Source of the DNA: Hypanus sabinus
Taxonomy: Eukaryota
Direction: 5' to 3'
DNA: 64,000 nt
Assembly: GCF_030144855.1 (NCBI RefSeq)
Contig: NC_082718.1
Span: forward strand, 5,394,001-5,458,000
The notes under the pieces are model-generated. The model ran no database searches, was not told the origin of the DNA, and worked only from the letters and a program-made list of their open reading frames with translations. Positions 13,915 through 38,090 of this stretch are shown in pieces. Position 1 is the stretch's first letter. Every line of letters starts with the position of its first letter. The translations under genes were made by a program, and so were the position numbers.

Positions 13915-13975
13915 ATGGATTTTACTTTGGAAAGGATGCTGTTGGCATTCGTTCTCTTCAGGGAGTTTGAACTGG
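13915..13975 (+). CDS. Coding exon 1: putative signal peptide MDFTLERMLLAFVLFREFEL(G)
   Basis: Acceptor ttttaatttcag at 13910, ATG at 13915, phase-1 donor G|GTGAGT at 13975. The hydrophobic core is short. Confidence 0.7.
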
Positions 13976-14074
13976 GTGAGTGTTTGCCTCTATGGAGAGA
14001 TTTGCATAAGTTTGTCAGGTTGATTCTTACAAGTTAGGTAGGTGATCTTAAGTTTCCTGTGGTTGTTCTTTGAG

Positions 14075-15132
14075 TGTCATAAGGGGGGCGTTGGGAGCAG
14101 ACGCAAATGCAAGACACAGACTCTGAACTACCGGGAACAGGACTAGGCGTGAGAAGGAAGCAAGGGAAGTGGGGAAGAAAGGACGCTGAACATGACACGG
14201 GATTTCAGGCCTGGGCTAGGACTTGACTAGGATAGTGGAACCAGGACATGGAACTGGGAACTAGGAGCCTGGGCTAGGACCCCGAGCAAAGACTGGACAA
14301 GGAACCAGAGCCTGGGTCTTGACTCGTGCTCAGACTCCAGAACTAGGTGAGGACAAGACGTGGCTACAGAATGAGGAGAGGCAACAGGACTGGATGTGAG
14401 ACTCCTGGACAGGACAAGGGAACCCCAGCACCGGGCTGGGAAAGGTACTCCTGGGCTGGGGGAGGCACATGGACAAGACGAGAACACAAAGCCGTGGCTT
14501 GGATAGGACAAGGTTCTTGGACGTGGCTAGGACTGAACGAGACCCCGAAGCCTTGACTTTGTTGATGGAGAGACAGGAACATGGAACACAGAGCTGGGAC
14601 CCTTCCTTGGGTATAGGACGTAGGGCCAGGACTCATTACACAGAATGCAGAATATGACGAGACAGTTCCCAACACAAGTTAGCGGCAAACAGCCGGACCT
14701 ACCTAGCAAAGGCATGGACACAGAGACAGTTCAAAACAACAAAAGACAGTTCCTTATCTTGCTGCGGTGGTAGAACTTGACAGCAGTGAAGGCAAAGCTC
14801 CAGGAGGAAGGTGAAGGGAAGGGATACAGACTGGGGGTTTGGACAGGATACTGACAAGACAAACCCCACAGAGGCAAGAACAGGATACTGACAAGACAAA
14901 CCCCACAGAGGCAAGAACAGGATACTGACAAGACAAACCCCACAGAGGCAAGAACAGGATACTGACAAGACAAACTAGCCCCTACACTTGAACCCAGGGC
15001 CACTTTATTCCCGGTCACAAGACAAGAATCAGGTGTCTATGATTAAGCCCAAATGAAACAAGGGACAGCCGGAAGATCCGGAGTCTGGAGTCTACGGACC
15101 GGAACGTGGACTTCACGGACCGGACCATGACA
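14075..15132 (-). mobile_element. Solo LTR (1058 bp)
   Basis: TGTCAT...ATGACA termini flanked by a 5-bp direct repeat TTGAG (14070-14074 and 15133-15137); AATAAA on the minus strand near 15005; no coding capacity. Confidence 0.8.
14844..14975. repeat. 37-bp tandem repeat, about 3.6 copies, inside the solo LTR
   Basis: caggatactgacaagacaaaccccacagaggcaagaa at 14844, 14881 and 14918, with a partial copy at 14955. Confidence 0.95.
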
Positions 15133-15255
15133 TTGAGTAATTCAAGGATTGAGGAGTAATCCCTTTGCTCAACGAAATAATACATGCGCAAGTGCACACA
15201 CAGACACGCATGCAGTCACACAGACACACAAACATACATACGAACGTACACATAG

Positions 15256-15681
15256 NNNNNNNNNNNNNNNNNNNNNNNNNNNNNNNNNNNNNNNNNNNNN
15301 NNNNNNNNNNNNNNNNNNNNNNNNNNNNNNNNNNNNNNNNNNNNNNNNNNNNNNNNNNNNNNNNNNNNNNNNNNNNNNNNNNNNNNNNNNNNNNNNNNNN
15401 NNNNNNNNNNNNNNNNNNNNNNNNNNNNNNNNNNNNNNNNNNNNNNNNNNNNNNNNNNNNNNNNNNNNNNNNNNNNNNNNNNNNNNNNNNNNNNNNNNNN
15501 NNNNNNNNNNNNNNNNNNNNNNNNNNNNNNNNNNNNNNNNNNNNNNNNNNNNNNNNNNNNNNNNNNNNNNNNNNNNNNNNNNNNNNNNNNNNNNNNNNNN
15601 NNNNNNNNNNNNNNNNNNNNNNNNNNNNNNNNNNNNNNNNNNNNNNNNNNNNNNNNNNNNNNNNNNNNNNNNNNNNNNNNN
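15256..15681. other. Assembly gap flanked by CA-rich simple sequence
   Basis: N run; (ca)-rich flanks at 15180-15255. Confidence 1.
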
Positions 15682-15769
15682 GCAGACGCAGACAACACAC
15701 CTTTTATTTATTTGTTCATTCTGTTGTCATTTATTCTCTTGTTTTTATCTTAATTTCTGATATTCTCAG

Positions 15770-16340
15770 CTCAGTTCAAGTTTAATTATCATTCAACCAT
15801 ACATGAATGCCAATGAATACAGCCAAGCGAAGCAGCATTCCTCCACAGTACCAACAGTCACAGACAACACAATGGACAGATCGTATCAATAAGATAGCAA
15901 GCACGTATAAGATATCAGTAAAATACGGTCATATAAAAAATACATCCAAGACCCCGAGTCCATGAATGTTACCTGAGCCTGCAGTCGAACACAATCTGCT
16001 TGTTTTCTGCTGAGCACTGACTGACTCCAGCAAGCAAGCTGCACCGAACTGCCTCCGGTGGCACACAACAACTCCGCCTCTCTCCAGGGCGGCTGTAAGC
16101 AGGTGACACCAGTCCTCGCTACGACCGAATCCGTGCAGCTCACCTGCCATCCAGCCAGTAAATCAGTGAATCGTACTTGCAGCGTTCCACATTAGCAATG
16201 TCCAACAGGGTCTTGCGATCACAGGAAAAGCCACTAAGACGCTCACTTACTGTTAGACTGCACACTGCCTTCACGGACTGACTCATCCGACACTCCTCTG
16301 CCTGCACCAAGTCCATGTCCTTCTGTCTCTCTGCCAATGA
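15770..16340 (-). mobile_element. Internally deleted Rex1-related element
   Basis: Minus strand 'IANVERCKYDSL' resembles the start of the Rex1 endonuclease; Rex1-like 3' UTR and tail near 15770-15850. Confidence 0.45.
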
Positions 16341-35478: not shown

Positions 35479-35859
35479 GTAAGTATTTGGTAGATGTGTG
35501 TGTGCCTGTGATAAGCAGTTTATTTCAAAACTACCCGCTCAACGTGTGTCACTTTCCCTGAATGTGAGACATGTGATATAACTGTTAAGTTCTTTTCCTA
35601 TCACTGCCTCTGTGGCGATCCGTAACAGCCAAGGAGCAGCTGGTAACACAGATATAGACATGGCTATAATGTGTTTTTCTAAGTACAGGGGAAGGAGAAG
35701 AGAAAGATTGTAAGTGCATTTTTACTCAAAACTCTAACTGACACTCAAGTTATCAAAGGCTGACAAAAATGAGGTATTTCAGTAGAAAGCAGGGACATGG
35801 TTCATGTAATCAAATGAAAAAAAAAACAGATGTGGATTTGGATATTGTACAGAAGAGGA

Positions 35860-36270
35860 CAAAGGGCAAAACATGGATTTCTGGTAACTCCCCTCTCCCC
35901 CTTTTCTCTTTCTCCATTCCCTATTCTGACTCTGTTTTTACTCCTTCTCCTCACCACCCTCTGCTGCCCCTCTTCCTTCCCTATCTCACATGGTCTACTG
36001 TTTCCTTCAGCCCGTCACATCTTCCACCTATCACCTCCCGTCATCTCTCTTCATCCCCTCTCCCCATCCACACCTATAACCTGCTAGCTTGCAATCCTTC
36101 CCTTTCTCCCACCTTCTCATTCTGGCTTCTTCACCCTTCCTTTCCAGTCCTAATGAGGGACAAAATGTCAGCTGCTTATTCCTCTGCATTGGTGCTGCCC
36201 AAGCTGCAGAGTTCCTCCAGCATTTTGTGTATGTTACTTTGGATTTCCAGCATCTGCTGAATCTCTTGTG
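35860..36270 (+). mobile_element. Penelope-derived terminal repeat fragment
   Basis: Pyrimidine-rich tract, then ccagtcctaatga..., then gctgcagagttcctccagcattttgtgtatgttactttggatttccagcatctgc. Confidence 0.55.
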
Positions 36271-37436
36271 TTTATGAATTGTTTCTATTGTTTCAGCAAA
36301 GATTGAGAGGGGACAGAATTAAAATACTGAGCAAAAATTAAAATCCAAGGAAATAAGAAAAATTTTGTTTATTCTGCAGATTTAATGCATCTTTTCAAAG
36401 GAGATTCATAAATACATGAACAATAGATTCACGTGTTTGCTGGAAAGATCAGGAAGTGTGACCAGTTAAAAAGTTTTGAAGTGTCTGCATGGGCACAGTG
36501 GGCTGATGGGTCACTTACTCATTGTACAATTCTGAGTTTATCAAAACCTGGGCAATGAAGTGAAAAAGGTGTGTCATCACTGATCAACTGGCCTCTGAAA
36601 GCACACACCCATTCCTCAAACATACTTTATTTTACTTGTGCACAAGTAGAACAGCGTGACCCTTGTCACCCACACTGTTCTGAAGTCAGGAAAGAAAAAT
36701 GCTATTTTCAGGCACAGTTATGTATATTGACCATTTGGTAAACTATGTATACTTAAATTTATAACTTGCAACATCAATCGACATTCACAATACAGGTGTT
36801 AAAAGTCAATAGAAACTACAAACTATGTTACTTTGAATTTAGTAAAGGAGTTGTCCCTTTGTTGGTCTGTGTATTTTGTTCTATCCTTCTCTCATCTGCA
36901 AGAAGCCAAAATGGCTCTGGTAATCTGTTATATATCATTGAAGCTATGCTTTTCAAAGACCTTTATTGCCTGGTCTGTCTGCACTCTCTCTGCAGTCTGT
37001 CCTTGCCCAGACATTATGTTAACCCTTGCCTTACTACAACTTGCACAGGTGGTCAAAACTGAGTTTTCTTGATTCTTGGTTTACAGTACTGTGCAGAGGT
37101 CTCAGGCACATGTATATAGCTAAGGTTAGTAATGTTATTATTGCAAAAAACCCAATTCCATGGGTGTAGGTGAGTAATGATAAACCTGATTGACTGTTGT
37201 CTGAGGCCTGATGGACTGAGAACAGGAAGGGGGCTGGAAGAGTGGACTCATGGTTGGGAAAAAGGGAAAGGAAAGGGGAGGGAGTGGTAAGCATCAGAGA
37301 AATGATCAATAAGCCAATTGTTTGTAATCAAAGCCCCGGAATTCCTTCTCTGCCACCTGTTCCACACCCTTCCCGTGGCAATTCTCCCTCACCATTCCCA
37401 ACTTCCTTTGCACCCACCAGATTTACAAATTTACAC

Positions 37437-37565
37437 GTACAGCAAGCTGGAGAAACTCAGCAGGTCGGGCAGCATCCGTGGAAATCAGCAGTCAACGTTT
37501 CAAACATTGACTGCTTGTTTCCACGGATGCTGCCCGACCTGCTGAGTTTCTCCAACTTGTTGTAC
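37437..37565. repeat. 129-bp near-perfect palindrome (64-bp arms, 1-nt centre) built from Penelope terminal sequence
   Basis: 37437-37500 is the reverse complement of 37502-37565 with about 5 mismatches. Confidence 0.9.
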
Positions 37566-37762
37566 ATGTTGCTTTGACCACAGCATCTGCAGTGTACTTT
37601 TTAGATTTACAAACTTGATTTCCGCTGTACGTTGACAAATACAGTGCTGTGAAAAGGTGCTGTGACACCTTAGCTGTATATATGTGCCTAAGACTTTTGC
37701 ACAGTACTGAATATACATACACGTGAAGCATCTGCTAAAGATAATTTCCTTGTTGTTTTCAG

Positions 37763-38090
37763 TGTATGTGCAAACAACTTCAGTGATGTTGCACTGAGAA
37801 ACATTGCACAGGTTGAGGAGTCATGTTGTGGGCTTCAAGTCATCACTAAAATCAAAGATGATGAAGAACTCTTTCTCCGAGTTGAAACGCAAGTCGAAGA
37901 ACTGCTCTCTTCCTATCTGAAATATGACAAGGAATGGCTTCAGAAAATACTGACTACGATTTTAAAAGACCTGGAGGATGACAGCTGCGTACCTGACCAA
38001 AGTACCTGTGCTAGGGTGACAAAGGTGAAAGCAAATATCAACAAGCTTCTTCAGAAGAGCAAGGATACAAGGATTAATGTTCCGCCCTGA
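37763..38090 (+). CDS. Coding exon 8 (terminal): last LRR plus C-terminal helical domain, TGA stop
   Basis: (F)VCANNFSDVALRNIAQ...FLRVETQVEELLSSYLKYDKEWLQKILTTILKDLEDDSCVPDQSTCARVTKVKANINKLLQKSKDTRINVPP*; acceptor ttgttgttttcag, phase 2. Confidence 0.85.

Follow-up and report, generated by a model that had tools for sequence, protein, structure and literature searches.

A stingray gene for a predicted transmembrane NLR with a B7-type immunoglobulin ectodomain, from a vertebrate family of apparently single origin

Introduction

Toll-like receptors are type I membrane receptors that respond to ectodomain ligation by bringing their cytosolic signalling modules together, and some members are sorted to endosomes. 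NLRP3 and NOD1/2 need association with a membrane, through a polybasic region or palmitoylation, in order to work. In BTN3A1, the cytosolic B30.2 domain senses phosphoantigen and the ectodomain is then read by gamma-delta T cells.

The only published proteins found to combine immunoglobulin (Ig) domains, a transmembrane (TM) segment and a NACHT domain are two from a sea cucumber, Apostichopus japonicus: AjNLRC4 and AjNLR-new. AjNLRC4, whose Ig domains are extracellular and whose NACHT is intracellular, has been reported to sit at the cell membrane (PMC8699970, PMC13133943); it is also reported to bind microbes and actin. Anthozoan NLRs with 3-4 N-terminal TM segments are putatively membrane-bound (PMC3879445). 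No report of a vertebrate Ig-TM-NACHT protein was found in the literature searched, which fits a sequence-only reading of the stingray DNA analysed here that took this design to be unknown in vertebrates; such proteins are, however, already present in RefSeq and UniProt under misleading names.

Results

The gene lies on the forward strand at 13915-38090 of the window, i.e., the whole stretch of 64,000 nucleotides of DNA from the Atlantic stingray, Hypanus sabinus, that was analysed. Its eight exons, with GT donors and AG acceptors throughout, were rebuilt from the window and join in frame into a protein of 955 amino acids (2868 coding nt, made of 955 codons and a TGA at 38088-38090), exactly as previously read. 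The spliced translation matches RefSeq XP_059843000.1 (P0001, Hypanus sabinus) residue for residue. The RefSeq label of this entry, "NLRP1 homolog", is a misnomer, since this name, like 'NLRC3-like' and 'NOD1-like', is due to NACHT similarity only.

Exon 1 (13915..13975, donor GTGAGT, phase 1) carries the start codon and a signal-like peptide, MDFTLERMLLAFVLFREFELG; exon 2 (16705..17049, phase 1 to phase 1) holds one V-set Ig domain (Pfam V-set 5.8e-9); and exon 3 (18331..18468, phase-1 donor) holds the stalk, the putative TM helix (about residues 154-172) and the basic flank KIRSKKQ. Exon 4 (25503..25532), 30 nt long, encodes the juxtamembrane linker EKVCLLEEDTK, in which an ExxxLL motif of the acidic dileucine type is conserved. 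Exon 5 (29908..31618) holds the pre-NACHT helix, NACHT, winged helix, HD2 and first LRRs, followed by one LRR in exon 6 (35129..35215, 87 nt; AF2 LRR strands) and two in exon 7 (35311..35478, 168 nt; Pfam LRR_6 and AF2), whilst translation and AF2 place the final LRR, a three-helix C-terminal tail and the TGA stop in exon 8 (37763..38090). The first four exons end in phase 1 and the next three in phase 2; the phase-1 donor and acceptor noted earlier at the TM and NACHT exons are found as described, with exons 3 and 4 both ending in phase 1.

A LINE reverse-transcriptase remnant (22573..23172, reverse strand; Pfam RVT_1 4.6e-25), with further minus-strand ORFs beside it, lies in the intron that follows TM exon 3 and precedes linker exon 4; it is one among several transposon fragments separating the TM and NACHT exons. 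Intron 4 spans 25533-29907, and intron 5 holds a minisatellite that is non-coding for the gene (33682..34863; 30 bp in about 40 copies, TRF score 1573). An assembly gap of 426 N (15256..15681) falls within intron 1 (13976-16704), outside all exons and with no exon abutting it. Its length cannot change the frame because exons 1 and 2 are joined by splicing, and all that hangs on the scaffold join at this gap is the linkage of the 20-aa signal exon. Searches by tblastn with CARD-bearing relatives as queries returned no death-fold exon in the entire window, which extends the earlier observation that none lies between the TM and NACHT exons, and no alternative 5′ exon for the NACHT part is detectable there.

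An intronless skate Logan contig (L001, 3341 nt), inferred to be cDNA because of this lack of introns, contains an uninterrupted orthologous ORF of 982 aa running from the signal peptide through the tail. The sawfish (Pristis) locus, which is free of gaps, shows the same exon order within 13 kb, with exons 1 and 2 only 411 nt apart and a homologue of the linker exon (L002, 14181-14213); conservation of exon order among relatives had been proposed as a check, and so had the V-set plus NACHT architecture, which is recorded in 12 of the 14 closest elasmobranch proteins. Proteins collinear from Ig domain to tail number at least 15 in elasmobranchs, 2 in gars and 6 in frogs, with the reservation that RefSeq models across species are partly guided by one another. 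Alignments of the gar and frog proteins begin at residue 23-30 and end at residue 932-953, with about 32% identity, and the Hemitrygon orthologue is 91% identical to the stingray protein. Every species compared conserves both the linker exon and the beginning of exon 5, in phase, and the gene is single-copy in most elasmobranchs.

In a careful IQ-TREE phylogeny built on NACHT-HD columns only, the Ig-bearing proteins are together monophyletic (100/100) and require a single change of state; within their clade, the split between bony and cartilaginous vertebrates mirrors the species tree. The sister of this clade is a group of frog CARD-NLRs (100/100; CARD by Pfam). On this phylogeny, the Ig-NLR family evidently arose once, before cartilaginous and bony vertebrates diverged. 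The claim that one ORF encodes signal peptide, B7/butyrophilin-type IgV, TM and NACHT-LRR is therefore upheld by the RefSeq model, the skate contig and the sawfish exon order, as well as by the end-to-end collinearity of shark, ray, gar and frog proteins and the monophyly of the Ig-bearing ones.

An assembly chimaera was also considered, and is ruled out by the skate ORF contig, the gap-free sawfish locus, the collinear orthologues, the NACHT-only clade and the purifying selection on the Ig exon (dN/dS about 0.27).

In skates, a short Ig-TM transcript bypassing the NACHT is also produced (L003; P0074 cluster, 5 members); it ends in an alternative exon, for which the stingray window gave no match. 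A sawshark isoform (P0011) retains little of the Ig domain, so the full-length form may not be the sole, or not the principal, product of the gene. Stand-alone Ig-TM relatives of about 210 aa occur in lungfish, axolotl and alligator.

The ectodomain has the V-set residues Cys40, Trp57 and Tyr-Thr-Cys 114-116, and two sequons within the Ig domain, N105 (NVT) and N113 (NYT); these sequons, the KIRSKK flank, GDTGVGKS and LDGLDE, all claimed previously, are present in the stingray protein. Its nearest solved relatives (PDB, phmmer) are CD276 (4.8e-24, the alignment spanning exon residues 11-96), VTCN1 (2.8e-15), PD-L1 (8.6e-14), MOG (1.3e-12) and BTN3A1 (4.5e-10), and AF2 places a beta sandwich at residues 24-135 with pLDDT of 80-90. 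Judged by its dN/dS of 0.27-0.28, the Ig exon evolves under purifying selection, and sharks, gar and frogs have preserved its B7-type sequence over more than 400 million years.

Signal and TM calls were made by hydropathy and AF2. A hydrophobic N-terminal h-region is seen by hydropathy in the exon-1 peptide (best 8-residue Kyte-Doolittle window of 3.1); it is only 8 residues long and followed by a charged c-region (REFELG). The peptide is kept in Hemitrygon (21/21), Mobula and Pristis, the Mobula exon 1 matching the window at 13873-13977 (tblastn, E 1e-5 to 1e-8). The exon 3 segment (2.01) is alone in the protein in reaching a Kyte-Doolittle value of 1.6 over 19 residues, and AF2 models a helix there at 158-172 with low pLDDT. 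The hydropathy maximum falls at the same aligned position in every orthologue; in all those tested (17/17) it is the only peak beyond the Ig domain, and K/R residues cluster behind it. Earlier concern over a short h-region and TM core holds for the stingray but not for its orthologues, which have 19-21 hydrophobic residues at the stingray TM position. The predicted topology is that of a single-pass type I membrane protein with a cleavable-looking signal peptide and an extracellular or lumenal IgV.

The cytosolic juxtamembrane segment of about 85 residues carries the ExxxLL motif, in which E181, L185 and L186 do not vary among 14 elasmobranch sequences. The pattern [DE]xxxL[LIV] lies 9-19 residues past the TM in 17 of 18 proteins, gar and frogs included, the dileucine call being a pattern match only.

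Exon 5 matches NACHT (8.5e-22), NLRC4_HD2 (2.3e-16) and NOD2_WH (4e-4) in Pfam, and contains Walker A GDTGVGKS, Walker B LIILDGLDE, sensor R399 and winged-helix H576; G278, G280, K281, S282 and D350 are invariant across 26 sequences. NACHT-WH-HD2 is thus predicted to be a complete NLRP/NOD-like ATPase with all nucleotide-binding motifs. Its best PDB sequence matches (phmmer) are NLRP3 (7.8e-21), then NLRP6 and NLRP1, and Foldseek aligns the cytosolic part with closed ADP-bound NOD2 (TM 0.67) and the closed NLRP3 hexamer (0.63). The AF2 model (whole-model pLDDT 76.8, pTM 0.71) has seven LRR strands with pLDDT above 90, instead of the roughly six repeats counted before, and confirms the helical tail, with helices at 881-900, 903-918 and 926-947. 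Gar and frog Ig-NLRs, as well as frog CARD-NLRs, share this conserved three-helix tail. Ratios of dN/dS are 0.41-0.47 for the NACHT, 0.29-0.33 for the LRRs and 0.24-0.39 for the tail. Pfam found no CARD, PYD, BIR, FIIND, FISNA or B30.2 in the stingray protein, and no signalling effector domain is recognisable on the cytosolic side.

Discussion

Very probably, 13915-38090 is one intact eight-exon gene encoding a type I Ig-TM-NLR of a single-origin family, in which NACHT opening would be coupled to IgV clustering. The cytosolic NACHT-LRR would rest in a closed ADP-type state, from which nucleotide-dependent opening would lead to oligomerisation. As the NACHT N-terminus is tethered at the membrane face, oligomerisation would have to occur there, and would thereby be mechanically coupled to the clustering of both TM helices and IgV domains. 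The dileucine motif suggests that the protein may travel from the surface to endosomes or phagosomes and back.

The direction in which such a protein would signal can be seen in two ways. The Ig-TM module takes up the position of the sister clade's CARD effector. It could be, by analogy with BTN3A1 and its B30.2, that a cytosolic cue is sensed by LRR/NACHT, which, as a switch, would cluster or expose the B7-type IgV as an output for a receptor on another cell; we lean towards this reading, though at somewhat less than even chances. Given where the Ig-TM module sits, this is at least as likely as signalling in the opposite direction, where a microbial or host ligand would bind the IgV at the surface, in an endosome or in a phagosome, cluster the protein and drive NACHT oligomerisation and cytosolic signalling. 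Such a ligand-driven receptor, proposed in the earlier sequence-only reading and about a one-in-three prospect in our judgement, would suit a type I topology that places the IgV outside, the endocytic traffic suggested by the conserved ExxxLL, and the sea-cucumber AjNLRC4, reported to bind bacteria via its Ig domains and to drive phagocytosis (PMC8699970). However, purifying selection on the IgV is as strong as on the LRR (dN/dS 0.27) and the gene is single-copy in most elasmobranchs, both more in keeping with a conserved host partner than with a receptor that faces pathogens; moreover, the cytosolic side retains a complete LRR sensor and a fold of the autoinhibited type, the Ig-TM module is at the effector position, and there is no cytosolic effector domain to relay a signal.

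Alternatively, the Ig-TM part might chiefly place an otherwise ordinary NLR on a given membrane (e.g., endolysosomal), the role of the IgV being minor or structural. The conserved sorting-type motif does adjoin the membrane, and LRR/NACHT would then sense local damage or microbial products at the chosen membrane, with precedent in NLRP3 and NOD1/2; but constraint on the IgV exon matches that on the catalytic domain, and its B7-type sequence is long retained, which a pure anchor would not need. This option is improbable.

Much less credible is that the model erroneously unites two neighbours, one a short B7-like Ig-TM gene and the other an NLR gene with its true 5′ exon elsewhere, the in-frame phase-1 junctions being coincidence or read-through. 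The short skate transcripts with their alternative end exon (P0074 cluster, L003) and the stand-alone relatives of lungfish, axolotl and alligator speak for it, yet it is largely refuted by the whole ORF held in one intronless skate contig of 3341 nt, the in-phase linker exon and exon 5 start in all species, the monophyly of Ig-bearing proteins on NACHT columns in a clade that follows the species tree, and a window with neither an alternative 5′ exon, nor a death-fold exon, nor the skate alternative exon. That the stingray gene is a pseudogene, a decaying lineage-specific fusion, is hardly conceivable. Its signal and TM segments do rank among the weakest in the family, but the 955-codon ORF and canonical splice sites are intact, dN/dS is below 0.5 in every folded domain, catalytic motifs are invariant and identity to Hemitrygon is 91%.

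The Ig-TM-NLR design, undescribed in the vertebrate literature searched, is shared by inheritance among sharks, rays, gars and frogs, and so marks an old vertebrate family of putative membrane-bound innate immune sensors. With NLRP3, NLRP6, NLRP1 and NOD2 the stingray protein shares the NACHT-WH-HD2-LRR core, Walker A and B, the sensor Arg and the winged-helix His, whereas it differs in its N-terminus (signal peptide, IgV and TM helix) and in having only seven LRRs with a three-helix tail after them. The frog CARD-NLRs (Spea 'NLRC3-like' P0015, Rhinophrynus P0017 and Pelodytes P0018) show 29% identity over an alignment that opens with exon 5 and runs through the tail, but carry a CARD (Pfam E 4e-5 to 5e-4) where the Ig family has signal peptide, IgV and TM, and, unlike that family, have no hydrophobic segment.

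Outside the vertebrates, AjNLRC4 differs from the stingray protein in its two Ig domains, two predicted TM segments and lack of LRR and tail, and the sea-cucumber fusion is probably independent of the vertebrate family. Anthozoan TM-NLRs are likewise putative membrane-bound NLRs, but multi-pass, without an Ig domain and invertebrate-specific. Toll-like receptors would be the analogue for a signal running from outside in, with no sequence relationship and with the LRRs outside and TIR inside, whereas here the LRRs are inside. The likeness to the B7/butyrophilin proteins (CD276/B7-H3, VTCN1/B7-H4, PD-L1, MOG, BTN3A1 and BTN2A1) lies in the V-set fold, the family sequence signature and an Ig exon of phase 1 to phase 1 with the TM exon next; in contrast to them, the stingray protein has a single Ig and no IgC, and its cytoplasmic part is an NLR of 780 residues, not a short tail or B30.2. 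BTN3A1 would be the best functional analogue, by a shared working principle and not by family membership.

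Results

The gene occupies eight exons on the forward strand, rebuilt here from the raw window sequence: exon 1 encodes a signal-like peptide (13915-13975), exon 2 the Ig (V-set) domain (16705-17049), exon 3 the transmembrane (TM) segment (18331-18468), exon 4 a 30-nt linker (25503-25532) and exon 5 the NACHT (29908-31618), followed by exons 6 (35129-35215), 7 (35311-35478) and 8, which encodes the tail (37763-38090). All introns are GT...AG, with phase 1 at the ends of exons 1-4 and phase 2 at the ends of exons 5-7, and the joined coding sequence has 955 codons plus TGA. The sequence-only reading had proposed this eight-exon model, including the junctions 18468>25503>29908, and re-derivation returned the same model, whose translation equals XP_059843000.1 (Hypanus sabinus, 955 aa, named 'NACHT, LRR and PYD domains-containing protein 1 homolog') at every residue. 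The NCBI pipeline, in other words, reached the same gene model independently.

An assembly gap (N run, 15256-15681) lies inside intron 1 (13976-16704) and adjoins no exon. Since exons 1 and 2 are joined by splicing, its length has no effect on the frame, and the scaffold join matters only for the membership of the 20-residue signal exon in the stingray gene. Hemitrygon has an identical exon-1 peptide, and conserved versions occur in Mobula, Pristis and other orthologues; Mobula proteins match window positions 13873-13977 (tblastn E 1e-5 to 1e-8); and in the sawfish genomic locus, which contains zero N, exon 1 leads to the Ig exon 411 nt away, in the same order as in the stingray. All three observations support the signal exon as part of the gene. 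Intron 1 also holds a perfect 37-bp tandem repeat of 3.6 copies (14843-14975), shortly before the CA-rich sequence bordering the gap, and intron 5 a 30-bp minisatellite of about 40 copies with 84% matches (33682-34863), which produces long spurious ORFs on both strands.

No second cellular gene was recognised in the 64-kb window, where pieces of LINE-type retrotransposon ORFs (reverse transcriptase, endonuclease-like) make up much of the non-exonic sequence, at 647-1105(-), 2400-3079(+), 5720-8366(+), 19725-24515, 27157-29423(-), 38692-39063(+), 41372-41803(-), 42632-43461(+), 46062-47677(-) and 51949-52554(-); only one fragment (22573-23172) is Pfam-confirmed. Three more assembly gaps are found upstream of the gene (6871-7070, 9306-10131 and 10133-10735), and tandem repeats with repetitive ORFs at 55377-55727 and 56427-56831, in VITVCTDRFTTIQ units (+) and HHTSV..APHVRQ units (-).

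Five lines of evidence indicate that this is one gene and not two merged ones. The first is an intronless skate contig (Logan, run SRR11241622, 3341 nt) with an uninterrupted 982-aa ORF, flanked by untranslated sequence on either side and running through signal peptide, IgV, TM, linker, NACHT, LRR and tail; this ORF shares 62-65% identity with the stingray protein and equals the little skate RefSeq protein in length. Lacking the introns that split the gene in both genomic loci examined, this contig would therefore derive from spliced RNA. The second is the sawfish gene, where the same eight-part exon order is found within 13 kb, so that conserved exon order, put forward earlier as a check, is borne out in this species. 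Thirdly, 12 of the 14 closest proteins, which come from rays, skates, an electric ray, a sawfish and six shark orders, have both V-set and NACHT on record, and one further protein has a sub-threshold V-set. Fourthly, when 1.8 billion representatives were scanned by HMMER with the first 260 residues of the skate protein, more V-set plus NACHT proteins came to light in two gars (spotted gar, alligator gar) and in frogs (Discoglossus, Pelodytes, Mantella, Pyxicephalus); from residue 23-30 to 932-953, hence from Ig domain to tail, the stingray protein can be aligned to these at about 32% identity. The fifth is a maximum-likelihood tree built from NACHT-to-HD2 columns only, on which the N-terminus has no influence. 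All 23 family members form one clade there (ultrafast bootstrap 100, SH-aLRT 100), and 22 of them carry the Ig domain, the exception being a sawshark isoform with most of it missing; one change of state suffices for the clade. Its internal branching, with bony vertebrates (96/90) apart from elasmobranchs (100/100) and sharks apart from batoids, mirrors the species tree. On these five lines, the fusion is ancient and has been passed on vertically, and is not a chance-repeated prediction artefact. A search for more actinopterygian members with the gar N-terminus gave only the gar protein itself and one shark, and none of the other large Ig-containing matches of NLR-like length was an NLR, all being B7-H3-like with several Ig domains or butyrophilins.

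The Ig exon matches the V-set family (Pfam E 5.8e-9, 36.6 bits against a cut-off of 26), with the core residues C40, W57 and YTC114-116 conserved and the sequons N105 and N113 located in the domain. Its closest solved structure is CD276/B7-H3 (4.8e-24 over two repeats, about 6e-10 per domain), followed by VTCN1/B7-H4 (2.8e-15), PD-L1 (8.6e-14), MOG (1.3e-12) and BTN3A1 (4.5e-10), and the label 'B7/butyrophilin-type' given from the sequence alone was correct. There is only one Ig exon, followed by about 20 stalk residues and the TM, and Pfam gives no C2-set, PRY or SPRY match in the protein. On a 19-residue Kyte-Doolittle window, residues 154-172 hold the stingray maximum (2.01) and are the sole segment at or above 1.6, directly after the Ig domain and before the basic flank KIRSKKQ. 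A maximum of 1.7-3.4 recurs at the same aligned position in 17/17 orthologues tested, and 3-7 K/R are present within 15 residues after the peak, orthologues included. The sequence of the segment is not conserved among orthologues, and membrane helices are typically poorly conserved in sequence. The predicted topology is single-pass type I, with the IgV outside and the NACHT in the cytosol. The stingray h-region, MLLAFVLF, reaches 3.1 on an 8-residue Kyte-Doolittle window and precedes a charged c-region; a comparable N-terminal hydrophobic h-region is seen in nearly all orthologues scanned. The earlier caveat that signal h-region and TM core are short holds for the stingray, which stands at the weak end of the family range, but not for sharks and skates, with their 19-21 hydrophobic residues.

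On the cytosolic side, exon 5 carries a NACHT (Pfam 8.5e-22, 78 bits against a cut-off of 26.7) and an NLRC4_HD2 (2.3e-16, 60.8 bits against 33.1), with NOD2_WH just below its cut-off (20.8 against 23.1 bits), and the C-terminal exons an LRR_6 (28.9 bits in the whole-protein Pfam scan). Walker A (GDTGVGKS) and Walker B (LIILDGLDE) are present, and G278, G280, K281, S282 and D350 are invariant across 26 sequences. The sensor arginine (TSRW) and the winged-helix histidine (FHHVVLKEQFAALY) are also present and conserved, H576 within FxFHHVVLKEQFAALY being invariant among elasmobranchs. Among solved structures, the NACHT exon is closest to NLRP3, NLRP6, NLRP1 and NLRP9. At E up to 0.1, Pfam finds no CARD, PYD, FIIND, BIR, FISNA or B30.2 in the stingray protein. 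The sequence-only reading had seen no death-fold exon between the TM and NACHT exons, and tblastn with the CARD regions of three frog proteins (from Spea, Rhinophrynus and Pelodytes) likewise revealed none in the 64-kb window; one match, of residues 62-133 of the Spea protein to the tail exon, has an E of 0.25 and is not significant. Neither is the tail itself a death fold, as it is modelled with three helices rather than six and Pfam offers only a meaningless GASH match at 0.06.

AlphaFold2, run with the 26-sequence family alignment, gave a model with a mean pLDDT of 76.8 and a pTM of 0.71. The Ig sandwich (residues 24-135), a long helix over the linker and the start of exon 5 (186-208) and the NACHT and helical core are predicted with confidence, and the signal-peptide and TM (158-172) helices with low confidence; seven LRR strand-helix repeats (708-874, pLDDT above 90) lead to three C-terminal helices (881-947). 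In Foldseek, the cytosolic part of this model superposes best on closed ADP-bound NOD2 (TM 0.67) and closed NLRP3 (0.63).

The 30-nt linker exon is not filler. It encodes EKVCLLEEDTK, with EKVCLL lying 9 residues after the TM; across 14 elasmobranch sequences E181, L185 and L186 never change while neighbouring residues vary, and [DE]xxxL[LIV] is found 9-19 residues after the TM helix in 17/18 family members (outside the elasmobranchs as EGVPLI in gar and ENEFLI, ERELLL or DDEPLV in frogs). AP adaptor complexes recognise the acidic dileucine signal [DE]xxxL[LI] in endocytosis and in sorting to endolysosomes, and the linker motif, as a pattern match only, has the form of such a putative signal.

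By a rough method with high dS (Nei-Gojobori on tblastn-aligned codons, stingray vs sawfish and vs skate, respectively), dN/dS is 0.27 and 0.28 for the IgV, 0.47 and 0.41 for the NACHT, 0.38 and 0.24 for the helical domains, 0.29 and 0.33 for the LRR, and 0.39 and 0.24 for the tail; the value of 4.8 for the stalk/TM vs sawfish comes from 41 poorly aligned codons and was disregarded. The Ig exon is constrained as much as the rest of the protein, which argues that the IgV may be a working part with a conserved binding partner, rather than a fast-evolving pathogen surface.

A shorter form of 214 aa, with five cluster members, recurs in the skate assemblies. It has signal peptide, IgV, TM and linker, after which the linker exon is spliced to an alternative terminal exon (...DNIK-GSPSSLTAHSAA-stop) in place of the one for the NACHT (positions 275-919 of the 1135-nt Logan contig from SRR11241664, compared with the full-length skate contig). 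This is not intron retention, as the sequence after the linker exon lacks a GT start and runs into a different exon. The 3′ part of the alternative exon has a 73% match in the sawfish linker-to-NACHT intron (17626-17813 of that locus) and no counterpart in the stingray window; searches for partial junction-spanning transcripts found only this short form. In the sawshark Pristiophorus japonicus, isoform X2 (P0011, 855 aa; isoform or paralogue) keeps TM helix, basic flank and linker, with most of the Ig domain absent. Because of the skate short form and the sawshark isoform, the locus may also yield a short B7-like protein. P0011 and the Mustelus protein P0010 share a variant C-terminal end, KLQKKLSW..., and are not grouped together on the NACHT tree.

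The nearest Ig-less proteins are frog NLRs of Spea, Rhinophrynus, Pelodytes and Leptobrachium, which can be aligned over everything from exon 5 through the tail and form the sister clade of the Ig-bearing family on the NACHT tree (100/100); 3/4 begin with a CARD (Pfam E 4e-5 to 5e-4). Because this mostly CARD-first sister clade aligns over exon 5 to tail, the Ig-TM module and the CARD are alternative N-terminal modules on one NACHT-LRR-tail chassis; either may have come first, the character change being unrooted. In the coelacanth, a 707-aa protein (Latimeria chalumnae XP_014348506.1) combines HD2, LRR and tail, the C-terminal half of a family member, with a family-type IgV behind them. Two tandem copies have probably been run together in this gene model, the end of one gene and the Ig exon of the next, in which case the family would be present and duplicated in the coelacanth.

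Stand-alone proteins of 207-336 aa, annotated 'MOG-like' or 'CD276-like' and having an IgV, TM and basic flank closely related to those of the stingray family, were also met with: P0129, P0145 (lungfish), P0181 (axolotl), P0160 and P0201 (alligator). The three aligned (P0129, P0145 and P0160) have 36-44% identity to the stingray protein, and the group may represent either the donor lineage or what was left once the NACHT part had been lost. Related V-set domains are joined to cytosolic innate-immune modules in a turtle (Pangshura tecta, P0139, 747 aa) and a characin (Salminus brasiliensis, P0146, 757 aa), one protein having two V-set and an interferon-inducible GTPase (IIGP, 4e-66) and the other two V-set, LRR_6 and PRY/SPRY; these may be real fusions or merged gene models.

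Discussion

The stingray gene model and its relatives are already in RefSeq/UniProt, hidden there behind labels ('NLRP1 homolog', 'NLRC3-like' and the like) suggestive of PYD or CARD domains that they lack. The sequence-only reading knew of no such architecture in vertebrates, and no description of a vertebrate Ig-TM-NACHT protein was found in the full-text literature, subscription journals lying outside its coverage. The whale shark genome paper surveys shark NLRs and mentions none (PMC8455134). Published membrane NLRs are the sea-cucumber AjNLRC4 and AjNLR-new, with two Ig, two TM segments and no LRR (AjNLRC4: PMC8699970), and anthozoan multi-pass forms (PMC3879445). The NLR core and the B7-type IgV are thus both genuine members of their kinds, in a combination and topology not described for vertebrates in the literature searched.

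We think it probable, with some reserve, that jawed vertebrates ancestrally had a type I transmembrane NLR, in which a cytosolic NACHT-LRR is joined by one membrane helix to an outside B7-type IgV, which is intact in sharks, rays, gars, frogs and probably the coelacanth, and whose link serves either as an NLR-gated 'altered-self' ligand for lymphocytes (inside-out) or as an Ig-triggered NLR (outside-in). If so, this would be the first vertebrate NLR spanning a membrane and a direct link of NLRs with the B7/butyrophilin systems. In the usual account, vertebrate NLRs are sensors in the cytosol or on organelles that carry death-fold effectors, and B7/butyrophilin proteins are surface ligands whose tails are either short or B30.2; to join parts of both by a membrane helix, as this conserved protein would, breaks both textbook rules. 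It would also imply an N-terminal effector swap, CARD vs Ig-TM, early in jawed vertebrates, and suggests an ancient route from intracellular sensing to lymphocytes, or from extracellular recognition to an NLR. The family offers a natural test case for NACHT oligomerisation coupled across a membrane, with spotted gar and frogs as tractable species for functional work.

Because the N-terminus of the NACHT would be tied to the membrane, via about 85 residues, the two membrane sides could be mechanically coupled: nucleotide-driven opening and oligomerisation would be confined to the membrane face, and the TM helices and Ig domains drawn together. We tentatively favour the inside-out direction, cytosolic sensing with the B7-type IgV as output. 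It is rated slightly above the opposite one because the effector position is occupied by the Ig-TM module, an LRR sensor and an autoinhibited-type fold persist in the cytosol, the Ig belongs to the B7 ligand type and changes conservatively, and no other effector domain is present. The outside-in direction, in which Ig ligation clusters the NACHT, is the model of the sequence-only reading and a possible one, though we lean away from it; it has a published parallel in the sea-cucumber AjNLRC4 (PMC8699970). That the Ig-TM module merely anchors the NLR to the membrane is improbable, as this leaves the constraint on the Ig domain unexplained.

Compared with known systems, the stingray protein has what NLRs have, namely a NACHT with Walker A/B, winged-helix and helical domains and C-terminal LRRs. 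It is NLRP-like, as its RefSeq name would have it, in the NACHT only, and lacks the pyrin domain of that subfamily as well as the FIIND and CARD of NLRP1. With B7/butyrophilin proteins it shares an N-terminal V-set with the canonical Cys-Trp-Cys core, but neither the membrane-proximal IgC nor the cytoplasmic B30.2 (PRY/SPRY). In BTN3A1, the cytosolic B30.2 senses phosphoantigen and the ectodomain is then read by T cells, which makes that protein a known parallel for the inside-out reading. Compared by architecture only, AjNLRC4 has two Ig, two TM and a NACHT without LRR (PMC8699970), whereas the stingray protein has one IgV, one TM, and seven LRRs with a tail.
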